A program made the position numbers and the translations under genes. The notes below the pieces were generated by a model. That model made no database searches and was not told where the DNA came from. It worked only from the letters and a program-made list of their open reading frames with translations. This document shows positions 8,701 to 56,735 of a stretch of DNA of 64,000 nt, one piece after another. How positions within the stretch are numbered: position 1 is the first letter of the stretch; each line of letters begins with the position of its first letter. This DNA comes from Podarcis melisellensis (taxonomy: Eukaryota). The DNA lies in the NCBI GenBank assembly GCA_964234715.1, contig OZ174279.1; one strand, written 5' to 3'.

Positions 8701-9344
8701 TACATAACACTGGGCATGTTCTAGCAGCACTAGAGCATTAGATAATAAGTTTTATTTATATCCCGCCCTCCCCAGCCGAAGCCGGGCTCAGGGCGGCTCA
8801 GAGGCCCTGATAGTAGCCAGCGTAAGGTACTAGTGGGGGTTCCCTTCATCTCATGATGTTGTGTGAAGGTGCTATTCTGGTCGCTCAAAATGTCCTGCTT
8901 GTTGCTCTCAATTCTAAGAGTCCAAAACACATTGACTCTGGTGCAGATCAGCAAAGAGGTTCTTAATGGCTCACAAATCTGGGACTTTGAGCAGGCAATG
9001 ACCATTTTAGGCTCATCCAAATGATGCACAATCGCGCACGCATGCCCAGTCCTGAACCTGAAAGTGGCCCCAAAACATAAAGATGTCACAAAAAGGAGGA
9101 AGAGGTCTGCTCATGCTCTGGTGATGCACATGGGAGTCTGGAACTTAACCCTCGTGCAAAATGAGTATTGCCTGTAATAGAAGCTGTTACTTTCCTTATT
9201 CCAGTACCATGACACCTTTGTCAGACTACTGACGTGATTGGCTCTAGTGCCAGTAGATAGTATGTACCCTCTTTTTTTATTTGCCATATACCTGTTTTAA
9301 ATATCATCCCAAACTTAATCAACAGATTCTCTGTTTATGAAATA

Positions 9345-9584
9345 CAGTCATACCTCAGGTTGAATACGCTTCAGGTTGAGCACTTTCAGGTTGCGCTCTG
9401 CGGTGACCCGGAAATGACGGCACGCGTTACTTCTGGATTTCACCGCTCGTGCATGTGCAGACGGTCAAAATAACGCCATGCACAGAAGCGGGGAATCGCG
9501 GCACACGCAGAAGCGGGTTGCGTTCGCTTCAGGATGTGAACAGGACTCCGGAACGGATCCCGTTCGCATCCTGAGGTACCACTG
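9345..9584. mobile_element. Tigger-type MITE
   Basis: TA|CAGTCATACCTCAGG...CCTGAGGTACCACTG|TA. Confidence 0.8.
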
Positions 9585-12500
9585 TATTCCTTTTAAAAAA
9601 TGAAACCCTTTTGATTGGTCAGCATTCAAGGGGAAAGGGATAAACCCAGTGTCCTTTACAATTCTATTGTTTCCTTTTCTTTTTGAAGAAGACAGGCCAT
9701 CAAGGGATTATCTTTCTGGGGAACACTCCCCCTAAAATCGGTGATATGGTCCTGTTCTACCATTCTGATCATTGGTAGTTTCTTTGAGCAGGAGGAAGAG
9801 AGACGTCTTCATTAAGAAGAATACTATCTATCAGGGGTAGATGGATTTGAGGAAACATTTTTTGTCAGCTCAGGTCAAGGTGCAGAAATTATACTCCATG
9901 AATCCTGAAACTCTAATTCAGGTACTATGAAATGACTTTTGTGTTAGACCACTGTGAATAGGGGGTTTAAGTTTATTTTCACAAACTGTTACACCCTGGA
10001 TAATTAAGAAATCTAGAATCACTAAGCCATTACTGCAATAATACATAGATGGAACTATGCTCTAAGAGAGACGCTGGAACAACATCTGCTTTAAATAAGT
10101 ATTAAGTAGTAGATTCTTCCAAAGTGTGTGAAGTGTCAATGCTACTATAAGTTTTCTTTTTACCCCGTCTGATTTTTTGTTTTACCCAAATGATTCCTGT
10201 TTGAGAGAGGCGAGGTGCAAGGTTGTCCATTAACAACACTTCAATCAAACTCCCACTAGTTTCTAGCTGACACTTAAAACTTCCCAAGGAGTCTGGTCAT
10301 GACCAGTGAATAACTGGGGGGCAACCTCAACCTTGTAAACCAAGATGATTAAAGCCACAGGTAGACTTGTTTTTCTTCCGTGTTTCCAGACAATGATTTG
10401 ATTTCAGCAATGCTACCCAAGCCCTGATAGATTCAATAATTGTACCAAGAGTGTGTGGTCCAACATGTCCTTTCCATGAAAATGGGCATGAAAGAGCTTG
10501 ACTAGAAGAAGCTCAATAGTCTATTCTACAAAACAGATTGATTACTGGGGAATTATTGTAAGACATCTCAGCCTATTTTAAAATTAATAGGGTTTGTGAG
10601 ATTCTTTGAAACTCATTTAATGTGGTCCTTCAGGGCAAATGTATAATCCTCACTGATTACTTAAAGAGACATCAGGAGCCCCAAAAGATAAACGTATATC
10701 CTTCTAATTCATTCACTATGCATACCACTCCTTATGAGGTAATAACCTTGATAGTGTAAAAAAACTGTCCCCTAAATAAATTATTTAAACAAATCATGCA
10801 CATTTCATTATATCAATGACACCACTGCAATTTTATGTTATTAGAAGAATGCTGAATTGAAAATCCTAAGGCACATCCTATACTGTACTGTCCTTTCTCA
10901 ATCCTTTGTGTTGTTGCATTGGGCTATCCTTTCCTACAAGAGCTTCTACAATACCTTAACTGGAGGGTCAGACAGTTGCCTTTTATTTTGTAGTGAAAAT
11001 GCAGACGTGTCGCTACAGAGCTTTTCTAAAAATTGCTTTGAACTTGTGTGTTTAAAAACAGTTAAGTTCATTGACATATCCTGAAAAATGGATTATTTTT
11101 GCCCTTTTAGTTCTTAGCCCTTGTCTGGGATATATTTTAAACTGTACCTGTGAATGAACTGGGCCTAATTGTTAATTTGAGAAGCTGTATCTATGTTCTT
11201 GGTTAAAAAGAGTGCTTGTACATACCTAGTATTTTCCATTCTTCATAAGCTGACATGACTGTGTTTAATATAAGAACTCTCAAATGTCTTGAGGTTATCA
11301 TAGCAGCGATTTCTATTTATAGGGTTGCTTTAACATGCGAAGGGAAAATTATGTAAATTATTTGTTCTATGGAAAGTAGATGAGTTAATGTTGGGAAATG
11401 CATGAAGTTACTGCTTTCTTTAGGAGCAAGTACAACAAAAATACAGCTCAGAAATAAGTTTATTAAAAAAACTATATTCTTCTGCGCGCATGACTTGAGC
11501 ACCATATGTTGTAGATACTCTGATCTTGTCTGACATAACCAGCACATAGCTATTGCTAGAAGAAGAAAGGGGCAAGGCAAGGCAAGGTTATTTTACTATA
11601 TACCAAGCTGATGTGCGTACTTCTTGTTAACATCTTGGTTTTCAAATCTTGTCATAGTAAACAAGTTTTCCTGAGGGCTGAATGTAGGTTATGCTTTGCA
11701 GCTAGACAGGTTTCTGCAAGTGATCTTCATGCTTTCCTAGCAGCCAGATCTAGTGACTGTATCTAGAATGTTAGGGTGTGATTTCTGTTTTTAACATATA
11801 CACTCATTCCTTCTACATAGATAGCTAGGGATCTTAGCAGGAAACATCACATAAATTCATGGAAGCTGCAGTGTATTGCTTGGATTTAAGGCAGGGAAGA
11901 GAGAGAGAAAATGACGAAGTAGCAAATTCATTTGCTTTCATGCCTTAAATGAGGGTCCTCCAGGAAAAATGGCAAAAATACAGTGTGGCCATTGCTCCAT
12001 AGCAAAGATGATTGAAACAAATACATATGCCTCCCCATTTACACAAGGGTTCCATTCCAGGGCCCTACACACATACATGGAATCGCGTATAATAGGGAGC
12101 ACCCTGGAGAGTCCTAGTGGCTCCCAAGGAGACCCACCTCAGAGCCTGAAGAGAACTGATTTGGGCTCCAGGGAGGATCTCCTTGCGTGCTTGAAGGACA
12201 GCAGGGTTTTGTGGAGCTACTTAGCCTAGGTTAGCACTGCAGCTGATCTTAGCAGAATGTGTCTTTTCCGCTATCAAATCTTAACGAGCACATCAGGCAA
12301 CTTGTTTGTTGTGAACAAATGGAATAAAATCTGTATTTTATCACAAATGTTTGGTACTTACTGAGAAGAAAGTATCGGCCAATATTTTATAATGAATTAG
12401 GACTTTAGACTGAGTTTTCTTCCTCCCATTTCTTCTGCCGATGCAGTTTGTGTTGTACAGGATCCCTTCAGTGACTCTCTCCTCTCACTCTCTAAAAAGT

Positions 12501-32312: not shown

Positions 32313-32526
32313 CAGTGGTAGCTCAGGTTACATATGCTTCAGGTTACAGACTCCACTAACCCAGAAATATTACTTCGGGTTAAGAACTTTGCTTCAGGAT
32401 GAGAACAGAAATCGTGCTCCGGCAGTGTGAGGCCCCATTAGCGAAAGTGGTGCTTCAGGTTAAGAACAGTTTCAGGTTAAGAACAGACCTCTGGAACGAA
32501 TATGTACTTAACCCGAGGTACCACTG
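32313..32526. mobile_element. Tigger-type MITE
   Basis: TA|CAGTGGTAGCTCAGGTTA...TAACCCGAGGTACCACTG|TA; repeated cttcaggttaagaac motif. Confidence 0.85.
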
Positions 32527-34470
32527 TATTCTCAAACTATCTGGTTTTCATTATTCTGATTGCATTTTTTTTAAAAAAAAAATTCAGTGCAGACTGCCAG
32601 AATAATCAAGCTGCTGACTTTAGGAATTTCCCAGTTGCCATCAAACAGTCTCGGAGCAGGTGGGAGGCCCTGCTGACCACGACATATCAAGCAGCAACTG
32701 CAGCAGGGAAGTGACATGCTTGCTACCTTTCACATGCTGAAATATGCTGCTTCTGAAGAGCCCTGAGGGAGTAGGCACAGGCTGATGGCACCATCTCCTC
32801 TTTTTTTATTCTGTAATTTGGGGGTAGGTGGATTTCTTGCCCCCAACCTAAGATGGGACCGTCTCAGCACTAAAATGGCCTTTTTTCTGATAATAAGGGA
32901 AGGATTATAAATTAGAGAGCAAGAAAAGTATTTTTTAAAAAAGTATATCCTTACATACATGGTTTAAAAAATGTCAAAAGTGTATTCCAGGTTGCAGGTT
33001 GGAATTCAAAAGTTGATGGTAGTTGATCCAAATGACCTACATGTTACTGGGAAAGAGTGTTATGGTTAAGATTTATACAAACATTAGTAAACTGTTTGTT
33101 TATCAGAAAACCGAGGAGGAAAATGCAGTTTATAAAAAATTAAAGTTAAAAATGTTACCAACAAAATCTAGGAATTGCCAAGGTTGTTGCTAAAAAGCAA
33201 AACTTTAGGATCAAGTAAAACTATAATTTCTTCAACACAAATCTGCGTAATTGAATCTTCCATACTCTGATAACTGGTATTTTGAAATCCACCTGTCTCT
33301 GTTAAGCAGAGAAAGACCTTCTAAGATCATGGCCAGTCCACAAAAAATGATGCTTCATACTCATAGATTATGCATCCACTTGCTTGCTCAACAGCCTTGC
33401 ACTGAGACGATGCGGTGATAATGCTGAAATAACAGAATGAATTAGTATATGTTTGTTTTACAAATGAATTCCTAATATAATACCAGAGACATTAGGCATG
33501 TGAAATAAATTGTTACCATGGTGATACCTAATTTACAACACATGAATAAATTCATAAAATCATAATAAAATGGCATGTTGACCATTTCAATCAGTTTGTT
33601 GTGGGCAACAATCCATATAGGTTCTTTTTATAAGTACAGTAAGTATATAGATAGTATTAAAGTACTGGAGAAGTTTCCCTGAAAAATCTTTAGGAGTCCT
33701 GGAAGCCACAGAATCTCAGTCTCAGGGAATTATTTTCTTTGTTAATTAATATCTGCACTAATTATCTTGCTACTTCCTCAGATGTGATCAGGAGTTAATA
33801 ACTGTCACTTTGCTTCTTTAGCTCAGTCACCATAATCACCTCACATGCTGATGCCTGTGCTGGGATAGACTCATCTTATGTTGGAGGAAAGACATCTAGC
33901 TACCAACATACTTTAAATATCTGCCAAAAGCACCCCCCAGATAAACAGGTTTCAATTATTTTTTGGTATGGGGCTCCATTCCTTCAAAGTGGTTGAATAG
34001 CTTCACTGAATAGTTTGAACAATAGTACTCTGATTGAGGGACACGGATGGTGCTGTAGTCTAAACCACTGAGCGTCTTGGGCTTCCCGATCAGAAGGTCA
34101 GCGGTTTGAATCCCCATGACGGGTTGAGCTCCCATTGCTCGGTCCCTGCTGCCAACCTAGCAGTTTGAAAATACAGTGGTGCCCCGCAAGACGAAATTAA
34201 TTCGTTCCGCAATTTTTGTCGTCTAGCGAATTTTTCGTCTTGCGAAGCACGAAATCCCATAGGAATGCATTGAAAATCAATTAATGCGTTCCTATGGTCA
34301 AAAAAAGTCCAAACAAAGCCAAATTTGGTACAACAACAGTTTATTAACTGCTCTTTAAAGTCACACATACTGTAAAGAGCAGTTCAAAAATTGAAGGGAA
34401 AATAAATTAACTTTATAAACATGACAGAAAAACATTTAAAAATCAACAAAGTGCACAGTACATACATTTT

Positions 34471-36171
34471 CTAAGACTCTGGGGGACCACTCGAAGAAGG
34501 CTCCTCTTCCACTCTTTGCTTCTTGGTCAAGAACCTGTCCATAGTCTGCTGCTTTATCCGCCTTTTCAGCAGCTCCCTGAAAGACGACATGACCCTCGTA
34601 TCATAAAAGTTCCCAGCGTCATGTGCCACGTGCTTCTCAGGGTGGTGTAGATCTGCAAAAGTCTGCACCTCCTTCCACTTCTGGCAAATGTCCCTCAGCC
34701 TTTCGGAGGACAGCCGTTCCTCAGTTGCTTCCTCCTCTTCCAGTGAGGCCTGCTCCTGCGCAGCCTCTGCCTGCAGTTCGACCAGCTCCACGGTGGTCAG
34801 CTCGTCGTCGTGCCCCTCCACCAGCTCGCAGACGTCCTCCTCCGTGACCTCCAGGCCCATGGTCCTCCCCAAGGCAACAATGTCCTGCACCACTGTTGAC
34901 TCTGGTGCATCAGAGTCACTTGGTGCCACACAGTCCGGCCACAGGCTGCGCCAAGCGCAATTCAAATTTCTCTGGCTGATCCCTTTCCAGGCCGTGTTGA
35001 CCATCTTCAAGCAGGTGACGATGTCGAAGTGGTCCTTCCAGAATTCCCGCAGGGTGATGGTGGTGCAGTCAGTCACCTCGAAGCATCGCCTGAAAAGCTC
35101 CTTGGTGTAGAGTTTTTTGAAATTGGCGATGACCTGCTGATCCATCGGCTGGAGCAGTGGCGTGGTGTTAGGCGGCAGGAACATGATGTTGATGAAGCTG
35201 AACTCCTCCAACAAGTCCACCTCAAGGCCTTTAGGATGGGCAGGAGCATTGTCCATCAGAAGCAAAGCCTTCAGCGGCAGGTCGTTGTCCAGCAGGTACT
35301 GCTTGACAGCAGGGCCAAAAGCAAGATTGACCCAGTCCACAAACAGCACACGTGTGACCCAAGCCTTGCTGTTGGATCGCCACATGACACTCAGCCGCTC
35401 CTTGTCGATCTTGTGTCTCTTGAAGGCCCGTGGGTTCTCCGAGTGGTACACCAGCAGGGGCTTGATCTTCAGGTCGCCGCTTGCGTTGGCACAGAAGAGC
35501 AGGGTCAGGCGGTCCTTCATGGGCTTGTGGCCAGGCAGCCTGGACTCCTCCTTAGTGATGAAAGTCCTTTTGGGCATCCTCTTCCAAAACAGCCCGGTCT
35601 CGTCGCAGTTGAAGACCTGCTGCGGAACGTAGCCCTCCGTCTTCACAAGCTCCAGGAACTCCGCTGCAAAGTCTTCAGCCGCAGGAACATCAGAACTGGC
35701 AGCCTCTCCATGCCTGACCACGCTGTGGATGCCAGATCTTGTCTTGAACCGGTCAAACCAACCTCTGCTAGCCTTGAAGACTTCTGGCTCGCCTGAGGTT
35801 CCTGGCTGTTCCCGGATGAGGTCAGCGTGCAAGGCCTTGGCCTTCTCACAAATGACGGCCTCAGACACTGTGTCCCCTGCACGCTGCTTCTCTTCTATCC
35901 AGATGAGCAGCAACTTCTCGACCTCCTCCAGGACAGCTGGGCGGTTCTTCACGATCCTGGTGACTCCCTTGGCTGCATCAGTCGCCAGGATCTTCTCCCT
36001 CATCTTCAGGATGGTCCCGATGGTCGATGGGTTCCTGCCGTACTCCCTGGCGATGTCCGTCACACGCATTCCGCCGTCGTGCTTCCAGATGATCTCCTTC
36101 TTCATTTCCAGCGTCACCTTCTCCTTCTTCCTCTCGCCGGCCACCGCAGCAGCAGTCTTCTTGGGTCCCAT
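34471..36171 (-). CDS. Tigger/pogo transposase, 566 aa (CENP-B-type HTH domains plus DDD catalytic domain)
   Basis: N-terminal TLEMKKEII...STIGTILK; FKASRGWFDRFKTR; HGEAAS; catalytic NCDETG, LMDNAPAH and QPMDQ, with 36 residues between the second and third Asp. Strong Kozak gctgccATGG; AATAAA on the - strand at 34340-34345. Confidence 0.95.
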   Translation of the reverse strand: MGPKKTAAAVAGERKKEKVTLEMKKEIIWKHDGGMRVTDIAREYGRNPSTIGTILKMREKILATDAAKGVTRIVKNRPAVLEEVEKLLLIWIEEKQRAGDTVSEAVICEKAKALHADLIREQPGTSGEPEVFKASRGWFDRFKTRSGIHSVVRHGEAASSDVPAAEDFAAEFLELVKTEGYVPQQVFNCDETGLFWKRMPKRTFITKEESRLPGHKPMKDRLTLLFCANASGDLKIKPLLVYHSENPRAFKRHKIDKERLSVMWRSNSKAWVTRVLFVDWVNLAFGPAVKQYLLDNDLPLKALLLMDNAPAHPKGLEVDLLEEFSFINIMFLPPNTTPLLQPMDQQVIANFKKLYTKELFRRCFEVTDCTTITLREFWKDHFDIVTCLKMVNTAWKGISQRNLNCAWRSLWPDCVAPSDSDAPESTVVQDIVALGRTMGLEVTEEDVCELVEGHDDELTTVELVELQAEAAQEQASLEEEEATEERLSSERLRDICQKWKEVQTFADLHHPEKHVAHDAGNFYDTRVMSSFRELLKRRIKQQTMDRFLTKKQRVEEEPSSSGPPES

Positions 36172-36651
36172 GGCAGCACAGCTCCTACCTTCGTAAACTC
36201 AGAAACAGAAAAAAAAATCAGTGATGTGCTTCAAACCCAAAAAATACAAAAGCAGCCAGCCACCCACCACACAGAAATTAAAACCCAGAACCAAGGCCTT
36301 GAATCCCAAGCACCCCAACCCCAAATCCAAAATCCAAAAACCCCCAAAAAAGTTTTAAAAGTTTAGCTTACCAAATGGATGAAAGAGAAGTTCTGGAAAA
36401 GCTTCAACAATCAACCACCGAAGTCCTCAGAAACCTCAAATGACTGCAAAATAAGTTTAGGAAAAGCTTCAAAAATCACCAATGTCTTCAAAAACCTCAA
36501 CTGCTCCCACGGACACGCACCAACCCACCCACAACACAGAAATTGCAAACCCCTCCCCAACTGCTCCCCCAGCCCCTCCCCAACTGCTGCAAACCCCTCC
36601 CCAACTGCTTCCCCACCCAGACAAAAAAAATTTCAAAAAATAACAACATGG

Positions 36652-37462
36652 CCAGCACTCAGAAATTCAAACTCAGAAAAATTTTTTTGAAAAAAAACAA
36701 CCTGGCCCAATGGTCACAGAAAATCATAAAAATTCCCAAAAAAACCCCACATGGTCCCAGATTTCTGCAGAAACCTCCCCAACTGTTCCCCCAGCCAGCC
36801 AGCACTCAGAAATTCAAACTCAGAAAAATTTTCAAAAAAAAACAACCTGGCCCAATGGTCACAGAAAATCATAAAAATTCCCCAAAAACTCCACATGGTC
36901 CCAGATTTCTGCAGAAACCTCCCCAACAGTTCCCCCAGCCAGCCAGCACTCAGAAATTCAAACTCAGAAAAATTTTCAAAAAAAAACAACCTGGCCCAAT
37001 GGTCACAGAAAATCATAAAAATTCCCCCAAAACCCCACATGGTCCCAGATTTCTGCAGAAACCTCCCCAACTGTTCCCCTAGCCAGCCAGCACTCAGAAA
37101 TTCAAACTCAGAAAATTTTTTTTGAAAAAAAACAACCATGCCTAGTGGTCACCGAAAATCATAAAAATTCCCCCAAAACCCCCACATGGTCCCAGATTTC
37201 TGCAGAAACCTCCCCAACAGTTCCCCCAGCCAGCCAGCACTCAGAAATTCAAACTCAGAAAAATTTTCAAAAAAAAACAACCTGGCCCAAAGGTCACCGA
37301 AAATCATAAAAATTCCCCAAAAACCCCCACATGGTCCCAGATTTCTGCAGAAACCTCCCCAACAGTTCCCCCAGCCAGCCAGCACTCAGAAATTCAAACT
37401 CAGAAAAATTTTCAAAAAAAAACAACCTGGCCCAATGGTCACAGAAAATCATAAAAATTCCC
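36652..37462. repeat. ~145-bp tandem array (5 full copies plus 1 partial) inside the Tigger leader
   Basis: The unit ccagcactcagaaattcaaactcag... starts at 36652, 36799, 36943, 37087, 37234 and 37379; copies are nearly identical. Confidence 0.95.
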
Positions 37463-40329
37463 AAAAAAGGCCCACAAGCCCCCAGATTATCGCAAACCCC
37501 TTCCCAACACCAAGTCCTTGAATCCCAAACACCCCAACCCAAAATCCAAAACCCCCCAAAAAAGTTTTAAAAGTTTAACTTACCAAATGGATGAAAGAGA
37601 AGTTCTGGAAAAGTTCTGGAAAAGTTTTGGAAAAGCTTCAAAAGTGAGCAAAGTCTGAGAAAAGGCTACCAAACCACGTGCTAACAGTTGCTCCTCGAAG
37701 TCAAGTCGCAACTGCAGCTGCTCAAGCTAAGCACCCTTGGTTTTAACGGTTTTTACACAAAGGAAACAAAGTCGCGAGACGTTTTCGTTTTGCGAAGCAA
37801 GCCCATAGGGGAATTCGTCTTGCGAGGCAAATCGCGGACGAAAAAACCTTTCGTCTAGCGAGTTTTTTGTCTTGCGAGGCATTCGTCTTGCGGGGCACTA
37901 CTGTACGCCAAAAATGTGCAAGTAGATAAATAGGTACCGCTCCTACGGGAAGGTAAACGGTGTTTCTGTGTGCTGCTCTGGTTTTGGTGTTCCATTGCGC
38001 CAGAAGCGGCTTAGTCATGCTGGCCACATCACTCAGAAAAACTGTCTGCGGACAAACGCCAGCTCCCTTGGCCTGTAAAGTGAGATGAGCACGGCAACCC
38101 TAGAGTCGTCTGCGACTGGACTTAACTGTCAGAGGTCCTTTACCTTTACTCTGATTGCCTTGTCCTTCTGCGTTTAGTGACCAGGGTTTAAAGTAGCCCT
38201 GTCACACAGTTCAGTAGGTTTCAGAGGATGAGCCAGTAGGGGTTTTTTGTTTTGTTTTTGAAGCCAGTCTCAAACCGCTGAAAGCGATTGGGTATCCGAG
38301 CAATATGTTGGTCGATGGAACCGCTGGGCTGAGCTTGCTTGCCAATAGGGTATTTCATGTCATTCTCTCTCCCTCTTCCTGCTGACACTGTGCCAGTTGA
38401 TCCTGCAGGTGGGATATGTCAAATCTCAGTTGGCGTCTTTTCTCTCTAATCACTTCATTTTCCTCATTCATGGTAAGAAAAGATTCATTTGCCAGAACAG
38501 CATGTACTCTGTAAATTTCCTTCTACTCCTTCAGCCCGGCATTTTGCTCGCATAATCTCTGTAATTCGCTGTTAATACCATTGCCATCTCTTAAAATGCA
38601 GTTTATTCCCATCATAATTCCCTGGTGAATGACATGCTTGTGTTATTGGCATGCATTGCTGATTTTTATTTTTATTTTTAATATCTAAAACTATTTTTCC
38701 AAGAATGTTTTCTCTGGCTTCCCAACAGCGGCTTCTATAGAAAACCAATAAGATTCTCCTCCCCCCCCTTTTTTTTGCCTTAATAACATCACTCATGGAT
38801 TCTTCATAACCATATTACATCATCGTCTCTATTCCTAATTACACTTCTGGATTCAAGTCACAACTTTCATTTAGCCATCCCCTTCTCCCAAAGCTGTCCG
38901 AGATTCCAGTTAACACACCAGACGAACTGGTCTTTTTATTTTGGGTAACAGCGTTAAGAGGGCTCATCTCCAAGTCATTTCTCTGGCAATGACAGTGTTA
39001 GAGTCTTTAACAAATCCTGGAAAATATGTGCTTCAACCCAAAACATTCAGTAAAAAAATAATAGTATGCCGTGTAGCTAAGTACTGCCATTTTATCTAGG
39101 CCTACTATGCCTGGGTGCTGTTGTACTATTTGTAAATAGTAGGTTAACAGAAGCATGCTGGTGGGGGGGACGCACACATAAAGTTCAGAGCAGCCTATAA
39201 GAAAGTGCATATTAAGGCTGGGCTGCAGGAAAATCTGTTCCCATTTTTGCAGGTGGGTCAGTGGACTGTGAATGTGAGATCAGTTGTTTTATTAGTACCA
39301 AACAGCTGGAAAAGTTGAGCACAGTTGCGCGTTGATTGTATTCGCCCCCGCCCTGGATTTTAGGCCCATTTCATTAAAAGGTGATGCCTACTTACTGTAT
39401 TGTGGCATCATGATATAGATCAAGTGCACATGCTCAAGGTTCTGAAGATCCATCATTTTGAGTTATTGCTAGGGACTGATGACAGTGTAAGGGGGAGTGT
39501 TTTTTTCTGAATAGTGAGAATACTTGACTACTAACATCTGGGGAGGGGGAATTGTGCACCTTAGTGGGCTGTAGGTGTGAAAAATATCAAAGAAAGCAGT
39601 GTTAATCTGTTCAAATTTACTTTATTGCAGTTATATCCCACTTCTTGTCCAATGAGTTCAAGGCAGCATACATTGCGTCTCACACGTTATGTCTAGCTTT
39701 GTAATGATAACCCTATGAAGCAGCTTAGGCTGAGACATAGTGAATAGTCCAAGGTCAGTCTTAGTATAGATTTGAATCTTTATCCCTAGTCCTAGTCCAC
39801 TCTTCTAACTGCTGTACCACACTGTCCCAGAGGCAACAATAACAATAACACTGTACTGGCACTGGGGTTAGAGACACTCAAAATTCACAGGAGCTGGGAA
39901 AATACATCAGTTGTAATAGAAAATGATTTCATTTTAATGTACAAATTAAATCTGGTATCCTGCATGCAGTTAACACACACAAAAGCCCATTGATTTGCAC
40001 AGGTAATTAATTGCAGGATTGCAGTCTGTGAATTTAAATTACCATGCTTTTATTCGCGTAGGGAAGGCGCAGCATACTAATGATAATATGAATTTAAAAG
40101 CATCTGTTTTCCAGCAGAGTAGGAGTAAATTATAAACTGATAAAACCAGGCACCAAGAAAAACACAGCAGATCTTAGTTTATGAGCTCAATCACATTGGC
40201 TTCAGAAATACTCAAGTTACACGCAGTCACGTATGGGCACTTAGTTCCCACTGACAACAAGGGGAATCCAAATTACTCATCTAATTGCAGAATTTAGTTT
40301 GCTGGATAAAAGAGGAAGTGAATTGGGGG

Positions 40330-56485: not shown

Positions 56486-56735
56486 TAGTTGTACCTTGGA
56501 AGTTGAACGCCTTGCAAATCAGACATTTTGGCTCCCAAACACAGCAAACCTGGAAGTGATTGTTCCAGTTTGTGAACGTTCTTTGGAACCCAAACGTCTG
56601 TCACGACTTCTGCGGCTTCCAATTGGCTGCAGGAGCTTCCTGCAGCCAATCAGAAGCCGTGCCTTGGTTCCCTAACATTTAGGAAGTCGAACGGACTTCC
56701 GGAACGGATTCTGTTTGACTTCCAAGGTACGACTG
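56486..56735. mobile_element. Tigger-type MITE
   Basis: TA|TAGTTGTACCTTGGAAGT...ACTTCCAAGGTACGACTG|TA. Confidence 0.8.

Follow-up and report, generated by a model that had tools for sequence, protein, structure and literature searches.

The locus at positions 34174–37903 of a 64,000-nucleotide stretch of DNA from the lizard Podarcis melisellensis (GenBank assembly GCA_964234715.1, contig OZ174279.1; this whole stretch is hereafter called the window) raises the question of whether a DNA transposon that looks intact is a newcomer to its host, a copy that is still mobile, or an ordinary member of a resident family. A sequence-only reading of the window had described an apparently intact, potentially active Tigger transposon at this site, within an intron of DOCK1, and had proposed a recent and possibly horizontal invasion. 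We conclude with high confidence that the element is a full-length autonomous Tigger (pogo superfamily, DD36D) inserted at a TA in an older short interspersed element (SINE), that it belongs to a multi-copy family long resident in lacertids and recently active in some of them, and that the window copy is structurally competent. We see in the window element an ordinary mobile element that has been well preserved, not a newly arrived invader.

A complete Tigger element inside an older SINE

The element occupies 3,730 bp (window positions 34174–37903), and its sense strand is the minus strand of the window. Its two terminal inverted repeats (TIRs), the target site, the SINE that it splits and its coding sequence (CDS) are given here by window position; L001–L007 are seven related loci that are compared below.

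34040–34171, plus strand: left-hand piece of the interrupted Sauria SINE, recognised by joining the flanks
34172–34173, no strand: left copy of the TA target-site duplication; a single TA is left once the SINE flanks are joined
34174–34195, minus strand: 3′ TIR in the sense of the element, CAGTGGTGCCCCGCAAGACGAA when read inward from the 34174 end; the same TIR terminates L001–L007
34471–36171, minus strand: transposase CDS, 566 amino acids, with CENP-B_N (residues 14–63), HTH_Tnp_Tc5 (82–150), DDE_1 (219–407) and the aspartates D190, D307 and D344
37882–37903, minus strand: 5′ TIR, CAGTAGTGCCCCGCAAGACGAA when read inward from the 37903 end; its A at position 5 is seen in the window copy only
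37904–37905, no strand: right copy of the TA target-site duplication, from the sequence and the repeat search
37906–38150, plus strand: right-hand piece of the interrupted Sauria SINE, recognised by joining the flanks

The two TIRs are 22 nt long with one mismatch; a TA borders each of them (24 nt at 96% identity when the TA is included), and a shuffled-sequence control gave 0 matches in 100 shuffles. Rejoining the flanks with a single TA restores one continuous Sauria SINE, which aligns, junction included, with three further SINE copies of the window. Since the joined flanks form a continuous SINE that was already mutated at the time of insertion, the Tigger element is younger than the SINE it splits.

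Between these ends lies a single open reading frame (ORF) of 566 amino acids without an internal stop, whose start codon stands in the context GCC ATG G. The Pfam profile DDE_1 is matched over its full length (1–177 of 177) with E=4e-37, and both HTH_Tnp_Tc5 (E=2.6e-12) and CENP-B_N (E=3.7e-5) exceed their gathering scores. The three catalytic aspartates are found in the motifs CDET, MDNA and PMDQ, with spacings of 116 and 36 residues that define the DD36D type; their codons, checked by hand, are at 35602–35604, 35251–35253 and 35140–35142. Across 108 diverse homologues the columns of these aspartates are 89–98% conserved. In the same set, 177 columns reach at least 90% conservation, and the window protein agrees with 172 of them; it keeps all three aspartates and departs at R58, K314, I372, V391 and I398. 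The CDS has a GC content of 0.566 and a CpG observed/expected ratio of 0.55, compared with 0.40–0.41 and 0.25–0.35 in the 10-kb flanks.

The N-terminus matches the DNA-binding domain of CENP-B (1HLV) already by sequence (E=1.2e-10). An AlphaFold2 model, calculated from a 50-sequence alignment, has a mean pLDDT (predicted local distance difference test) of 69.8, with most of the catalytic core at 80–97. The fold class of the protein is apparent from the top Foldseek matches of this model, namely Mos1 mariner transpososomes (E~2e-6), CENP-B residues 1–129, the SETMAR/Metnase transposase domain and the catalytic domain of Sleeping Beauty. A long helical C-terminal tail is predicted at residues ~427–550.

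In all of these respects the sequence-only reading is borne out: it had reported near-perfect TIRs with a TA duplication, an insertion younger than the Sauria SINE, an uninterrupted 566-residue frame with all three catalytic aspartates (the coding capacity is indeed intact), a Kozak context with a polyadenylation signal, and a CDS rich in GC and CpG within AT-rich, CpG-poor surroundings. Its overall identification of a full-length autonomous Tigger/pogo element of the DD36D type is confirmed by the TIRs, the TA duplications, the domains and the ORF.

Read in the sense direction, the layout is 5′ TIR, five YCGCAAGACGAA motifs, a 1.7-kb leader, the CDS and a 297-nt 3′ region; the last of these holds the polyadenylation signal, three further YCGCAAGACGAA copies and the 3′ TIR. 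The non-coding parts are listed below.

34184–34245, no strand: three occurrences of YCGCAAGACGAA, a 12-nt motif, at the 3′ end, from a motif search; 16-nt tandem
34340–34345, minus strand: AATAAA polyadenylation signal, 126 nt past the stop codon and at the same position in all 8 copies (window and seven relatives)
36172–37881, minus strand: non-coding leader of 1.7 kb, from the 5′ TIR to the ATG, with putative splice motifs
36284–36401, no strand: proximal copy of a ~120-bp direct duplication that brackets the minisatellite (repeat families D9 and D10, 88–95% identity)
36651–37488, no strand: 145-bp minisatellite, 5.8 copies with 93% matches, from a tandem-repeat search
37503–37613, no strand: distal copy of the ~120-bp direct duplication, partner of 36284–36401
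37784–37893, no strand: five copies of YCGCAAGACGAA at the 5′ end, from motif and tandem-repeat searches

Eight of the ten YCGCAAGACGAA matches in the whole window fall within the two element ends, and these repeats are likely to be transposase-binding sites. We also note a 15-nt palindrome, perfect but for one position (CCATAGGAATGCATT / AATGCGTTCCTATGG), in the 3′ subterminal region at 34257–34297, and a related CCCATAGG motif near the 5′ end (~37802).

The leader is the variable part of the element. Among the relatives with both ends mapped its length ranges from 1033 to 2123 nt, and the array of L007 exceeds 3.4 kb. The minisatellite itself differs greatly between family copies; a strong G/T enrichment of the array is seen on the sense strand, with a GC skew of about −0.5 on the plus strand. 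Through the ~120-bp duplication, a donor-like CCATTTG/GTAAG is present twice (36371–36382 and 37583–37594, minus strand), and an acceptor-like polypyrimidine tract followed by CTGAG is located ~25 nt before the ATG (36198–36225, minus strand). These splice-like motifs recur in related Podarcis copies, and the acceptor-like site is a G-run in the L. agilis locus L002. Their conservation is partial, and the leader transcript is possibly spliced. For the annotation of this locus, the insertion brings its own polyadenylation signal and putative splice-like motifs into the presumed intron.

Homology to other transposons suggests how the element would work. The leader would act as the promoter of a possibly spliced transcript with its end at the conserved AATAAA. 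The resulting 566-residue transposase would bind the TIRs and the subterminal YCGCAAGACGAA repeats through its two N-terminal helix-turn-helix domains, and a catalytically competent RNase-H-like DDD domain would then excise the element and reinsert it at a TA.

A multi-copy family in lacertid lizards

A word-based protein search returned 1359 matches, the best of which is a 566-residue ‘tigger transposable element-derived protein 1-like’ from Lacerta agilis with 89% identity, the representative of a 45-member cluster. Proteins from Podarcis lilfordi, P. raffonei and P. muralis are 86–96% identical to the window transposase, with 91–96% for the best Podarcis matches, and an exact look-up did not find the window protein itself in the public protein collection. 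Proteins of the family are already known in public annotation, where they figure as TIGD1-like gene models.

We compared seven related loci from L. agilis, P. raffonei and P. lilfordi (L001–L007), all of them natural copies. Each of the seven carries the same 3′ TIR with its TA, in unrelated flanks, and the family is present in these three species as multiple copies at non-orthologous sites. The 5′ TIR was mapped in six loci, always flanked by TA; five of these fit a pattern that allows up to three differing positions, and the 5′ TIR of L002 has one base different. For L007, no 5′ end turned up past an array of more than 3.4 kb. Where both ends were mapped, the element measures 3026–4373 bp, and the variation sits in the leader array.

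Compared over the 1998 nt of CDS and 3′ end, the DNA of the window copy is 3.6–6.3% divergent from that of the seven loci. ORFs of 563 codons or more are retained in four of the loci, three of which have 566 or 567, and the other three loci have premature stops. Pairwise dS (synonymous divergence) between copies is 0.05–0.12, with the exception of one very recent pair, and 0.07–0.12 between Lacerta and Podarcis; the corresponding ratio of non-synonymous to synonymous divergence (dN/dS) is 0.24–0.75, which demonstrates coding constraint along the family.

Some members are much closer to one another. Five 566-residue proteins of L. agilis (P0121, P0126, P0127, P0130 and P0133), encoded on different chromosomes, are 1–6 amino acids apart. 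In P. lilfordi, L001 (OX395134) and L004 (OX395143) likewise lie on different chromosomes and differ by 0.4% over 2 kb. Because of these near-identical L. agilis proteins and the P. lilfordi pair, we find that the family has recently transposed in at least two lacertid lineages, and the same observations suggest that it did so no more than about a few million years ago. Judged by their sequences, the L. agilis copies indicate a very recent burst, and they would be stronger candidates for current activity than the window copy. Within the P. lilfordi pair, the ORF of one copy encodes 567 amino acids and that of its partner is cut off at codon 459.

A maximum-likelihood protein tree of 51 sequences (IQ-TREE quick search, with support from the Shimodaira–Hasegawa-like approximate likelihood ratio test, SH-aLRT, only) places the window protein in a five-member clade with copies from P. 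raffonei and P. lilfordi (SH-aLRT 100). This Podarcis clade sits within an 11-member lacertid clade (SH-aLRT 99) as the sister of the L. agilis copies. Outside the lacertid clade follow, in order, a Zootoca clade with a sequence from a Logan run and then Pogona. The Logan sequence is a 1744-bp contig of SRR4235031 (L008) whose transposase shares 81% identity at the protein and 87% at the DNA level; it groups with the Zootoca clade (SH-aLRT 93), and together they form the sister group of the Podarcis and Lacerta family. All of the 120 top matches that carry a name are tigger or TIGD1-like, and the tree was built without references from Passer, pogoR, Lemi, Mover and Fot. Since the tree follows the host genera and dS between copies is 0.05–0.12, we find that the lineage has been resident, and evolving, in lacertids.

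Origin and age of the window copy

The residence of the family bears directly on the invasion that had been proposed. A horizontal transfer into this lizard lineage in recent times would accord with the patchiness of the wider Tigger tree, in which the toad Pelobates falls among squamates and sequences from bats, fish and arthropods are interleaved, with the published frequency of Tigger horizontal transfer (PMC9219625), and with a CDS that is rich in GC and CpG relative to the host intron. The patchy tree does fit frequent transfer, yet it concerns deeper nodes, whereas the lacertid part of the tree follows the host genera with Podarcis and lacertid clades at 100% and 99% SH-aLRT. In addition, L. 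agilis, P. raffonei, P. lilfordi and P. muralis each carry the family in multiple copies, so that it is present in at least four lacertid species with inter-copy dS of 0.05–0.12, and the high GC and CpG content is a trait of all family copies. Among the 1359 matches no non-lacertid relative exceeds 81% amino-acid identity, the 81% match being that of the SRR4235031 run, and scans of viral contigs with the single protein and with an alignment found no relative. Comparison with other taxa, which the sequence-only reading had suggested as a check, instead recovers the same family at different loci in Lacerta and Podarcis, and we regard a recent arrival as very improbable. An intact ORF and pairwise dN/dS below 1 would also be expected of a TIGD-like host gene domesticated from the transposase, for which a single syntenic copy under purifying selection had been named as the sign. 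What we find are both TIRs, the TA duplications and the subterminal repeats still in place, copies at several unrelated loci in every species sampled, an element that sits inside a SINE, and a branch without private coding constraint above the level of the family. With the TIRs kept and the copies non-syntenic, domestication was rejected, and its probability is close to nil.

The evidence on the age of the window copy is mixed. Private changes were counted over the 1998 nt of CDS and 3′ end against the seven sampled copies, and several observations weigh against the reading we prefer. The window copy carries 31 private substitutions (1.55%), 19 of them non-synonymous and 8 synonymous within the CDS; because none of the sampled copies comes from the window's own genome, 1.55% is only an upper bound on divergence since insertion. 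Its branch dN/dS is ~0.68, which is statistically indistinguishable from neutrality (P=0.24) and from an omega of 0.35–0.45 (P=0.08–0.21). One of the private changes is I391V, in a column that is 99% conserved. The 5′ TIR, too, has a change at position 5 that is confined to the window copy, and even the closest of the sampled copies shows 3.6% DNA divergence. These same data can be read as the record of an old immobile copy, a fossil of several million years whose frame was kept by chance and whose post-insertion changes are neutral. In support of this, the branch dN/dS is compatible with neutrality and an omega of 0.25 is rejected (P=0.01), the probability of meeting no stop after 27 random substitutions is as high as 0.34, the changes at TIR position 5 and I391V are private to the copy, and the end branches of the other Podarcis copies are long too (0.018–0.054), compared with 0–0.02 in L. 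agilis and no more than 0.004 among its five near-identical proteins. Other features are unlike decay in place. The window copy has no private indel in 1998 nt, whereas other copies have up to 7 indel columns and the decayed ones 1–7; it keeps 70 of the 74 CpG sites of the family, among the best of the 8 copies, at about the level of the youngest P. lilfordi copies and above L003, L005 and L007. CpG decay accounts for only 2 of the 31 private changes, and 14 transitions stand against 17 transversions (a ratio of 0.8), a spectrum that resembles that of the L. agilis copy and differs from the transition- and CpG-rich spectra of L003 and the broken L007. The ‘private’ changes of the L. agilis copy are themselves largely lineage-level, since its sister proteins are only 3–6 amino acids away (28 for the outlier P0001). 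The private amino-acid changes of the window copy are, moreover, mostly conservative. We regard the fossil as a serious contender, at somewhat less than an even chance.

In sum, the reading we prefer is that of a long-resident Tigger family whose window copy is structurally competent and putatively also catalytically competent. We rate current activity of this particular copy as rather unlikely. A bolder proposal would hold that the lacertid family is still transposing, with the window copy as one of its autonomous sources, young and possibly polymorphic; the leader of that copy would be unusually long and apparently spliced, with a fast-varying 145-bp minisatellite. We consider this rather unlikely. 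If it were true, a Tigger active by nature would exist in an amniote, and it could serve in its natural form as a transposon system for vertebrates. The useful result is at the level of the family, of which many full-length copies exist in lacertid genomes, and naturally intact Tigger elements of this kind are candidates for the study of how DNA transposons persist in amniotes.

Neighbouring MITEs and known systems

The window further contains three MITEs (miniature inverted-repeat transposable elements) of ~215–250 bp with CAGT...GTACCT-type TIRs, which belong to other Tigger-like families.

9343–9586: MITE with the TIR CAGTCATACCTCAGG, flanked by TA
32313–32526: MITE with the TIR CAGTGGTAGCTCAGG, flanked by TA
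56486–56735: MITE with the TIR TAGTTGTACCTTGGAAG, flanked by TA

The sequence-only reading had described their TIRs as only partly similar to those of the Tigger element, which is correct, the shared part being the first 7–8 nt. Derivation of the three MITEs from the Tigger element was considered and rejected, as nothing beyond these 7–8 nt is common and the GCAAGACGAA motif is lacking. The same reading had put the element forward as a mobiliser of CAGT-ended MITEs. Given TIRs that differ past the first 7–8 nt and the lack of the binding-site-like motif, the window transposase is unlikely to mobilise any of the three.

Tigger is a family of the pogo superfamily with DD29-36D transposases that carry CENP-B_N as well as HTH_Tnp_Tc5 domains (PMC7386202). 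In squamates it has been described from five species, with elements of 2336–3988 bp, proteins of 532–618 amino acids, TIRs of 17–26 nt and TA duplications, and it ‘seems to be active’ in reptiles (PMC9219625). Among the species surveyed, intact copies were reported for 4 of 5 squamates, 21 of 24 turtles and 46 of 100 eutherians (PMC9219625), so that the earlier remark that intact copies are uncommon in amniotes was overstated. The tables of that study hold no entry for Podarcis, Lacerta or Zootoca, and our literature search found no paper on a lacertid Tigger. The only experimentally active element of the pogo superfamily that this search found was Passer, from fish, and it found no assayed Tigger.

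The closest known systems are the lacertid TIGD1-like gene models (the XP_033001754 cluster of L. agilis and those of P. raffonei, P. lilfordi and P. muralis), which have 88.5–96% amino-acid identity to the window copy and share with it the same TIRs, the position of the polyadenylation signal and the leader architecture. The 566-residue ORF is likewise found in the L. agilis and in some of the Podarcis models. The window copy differs from them in its insertion site and in its 31 private substitutions.

Beyond lacertids, the element resembles published Tigger1/TIGD1-like elements such as that of Anolis carolinensis (3708 bp, 569 amino acids; PMC9219625, Table S1). It shares with the Tigger family the TA duplication, TIRs that start with CAGT, the CENP-B_N domain, the HTH_Tnp_Tc5 domain and a DDD spacing of 36 that falls within DD29-36D, and its length, ORF and TIR size are inside the published squamate ranges. 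The motifs FKASRGWF, NCDETGLF, DNAPAH and QPMDQQV also agree with the published alignment. In contrast, the TIR sequence and the minisatellite-bearing leader set it apart from the Tigger elements tabulated in PMC9219625.

Similar to the window element, Passer (PS) belongs to the pogo superfamily and has a cut-and-paste DDD transposase and a TA target. It is a separate family, with DD35D spacing and other DNA-binding domains (PMC7386202). The activity of Passer has been demonstrated by experiment (PMC9976928), whereas the window element is a candidate.

At the level of domains, the N-terminal DNA-binding region is like that of CENP-B (1HLV), whose residues 1–129 it matches both by sequence and by predicted fold. 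The predicted fold of the whole protein and of its catalytic domain is like those of Mos1 (3HOS/5HOO), SETMAR and Sleeping Beauty. However, the window transposase is only 12–14% identical to mariner/Tc1 catalytic domains, and its triad is DDD and not DDE. Its long helical C-terminal tail, as predicted at residues ~427–550, is a further difference from mariner.

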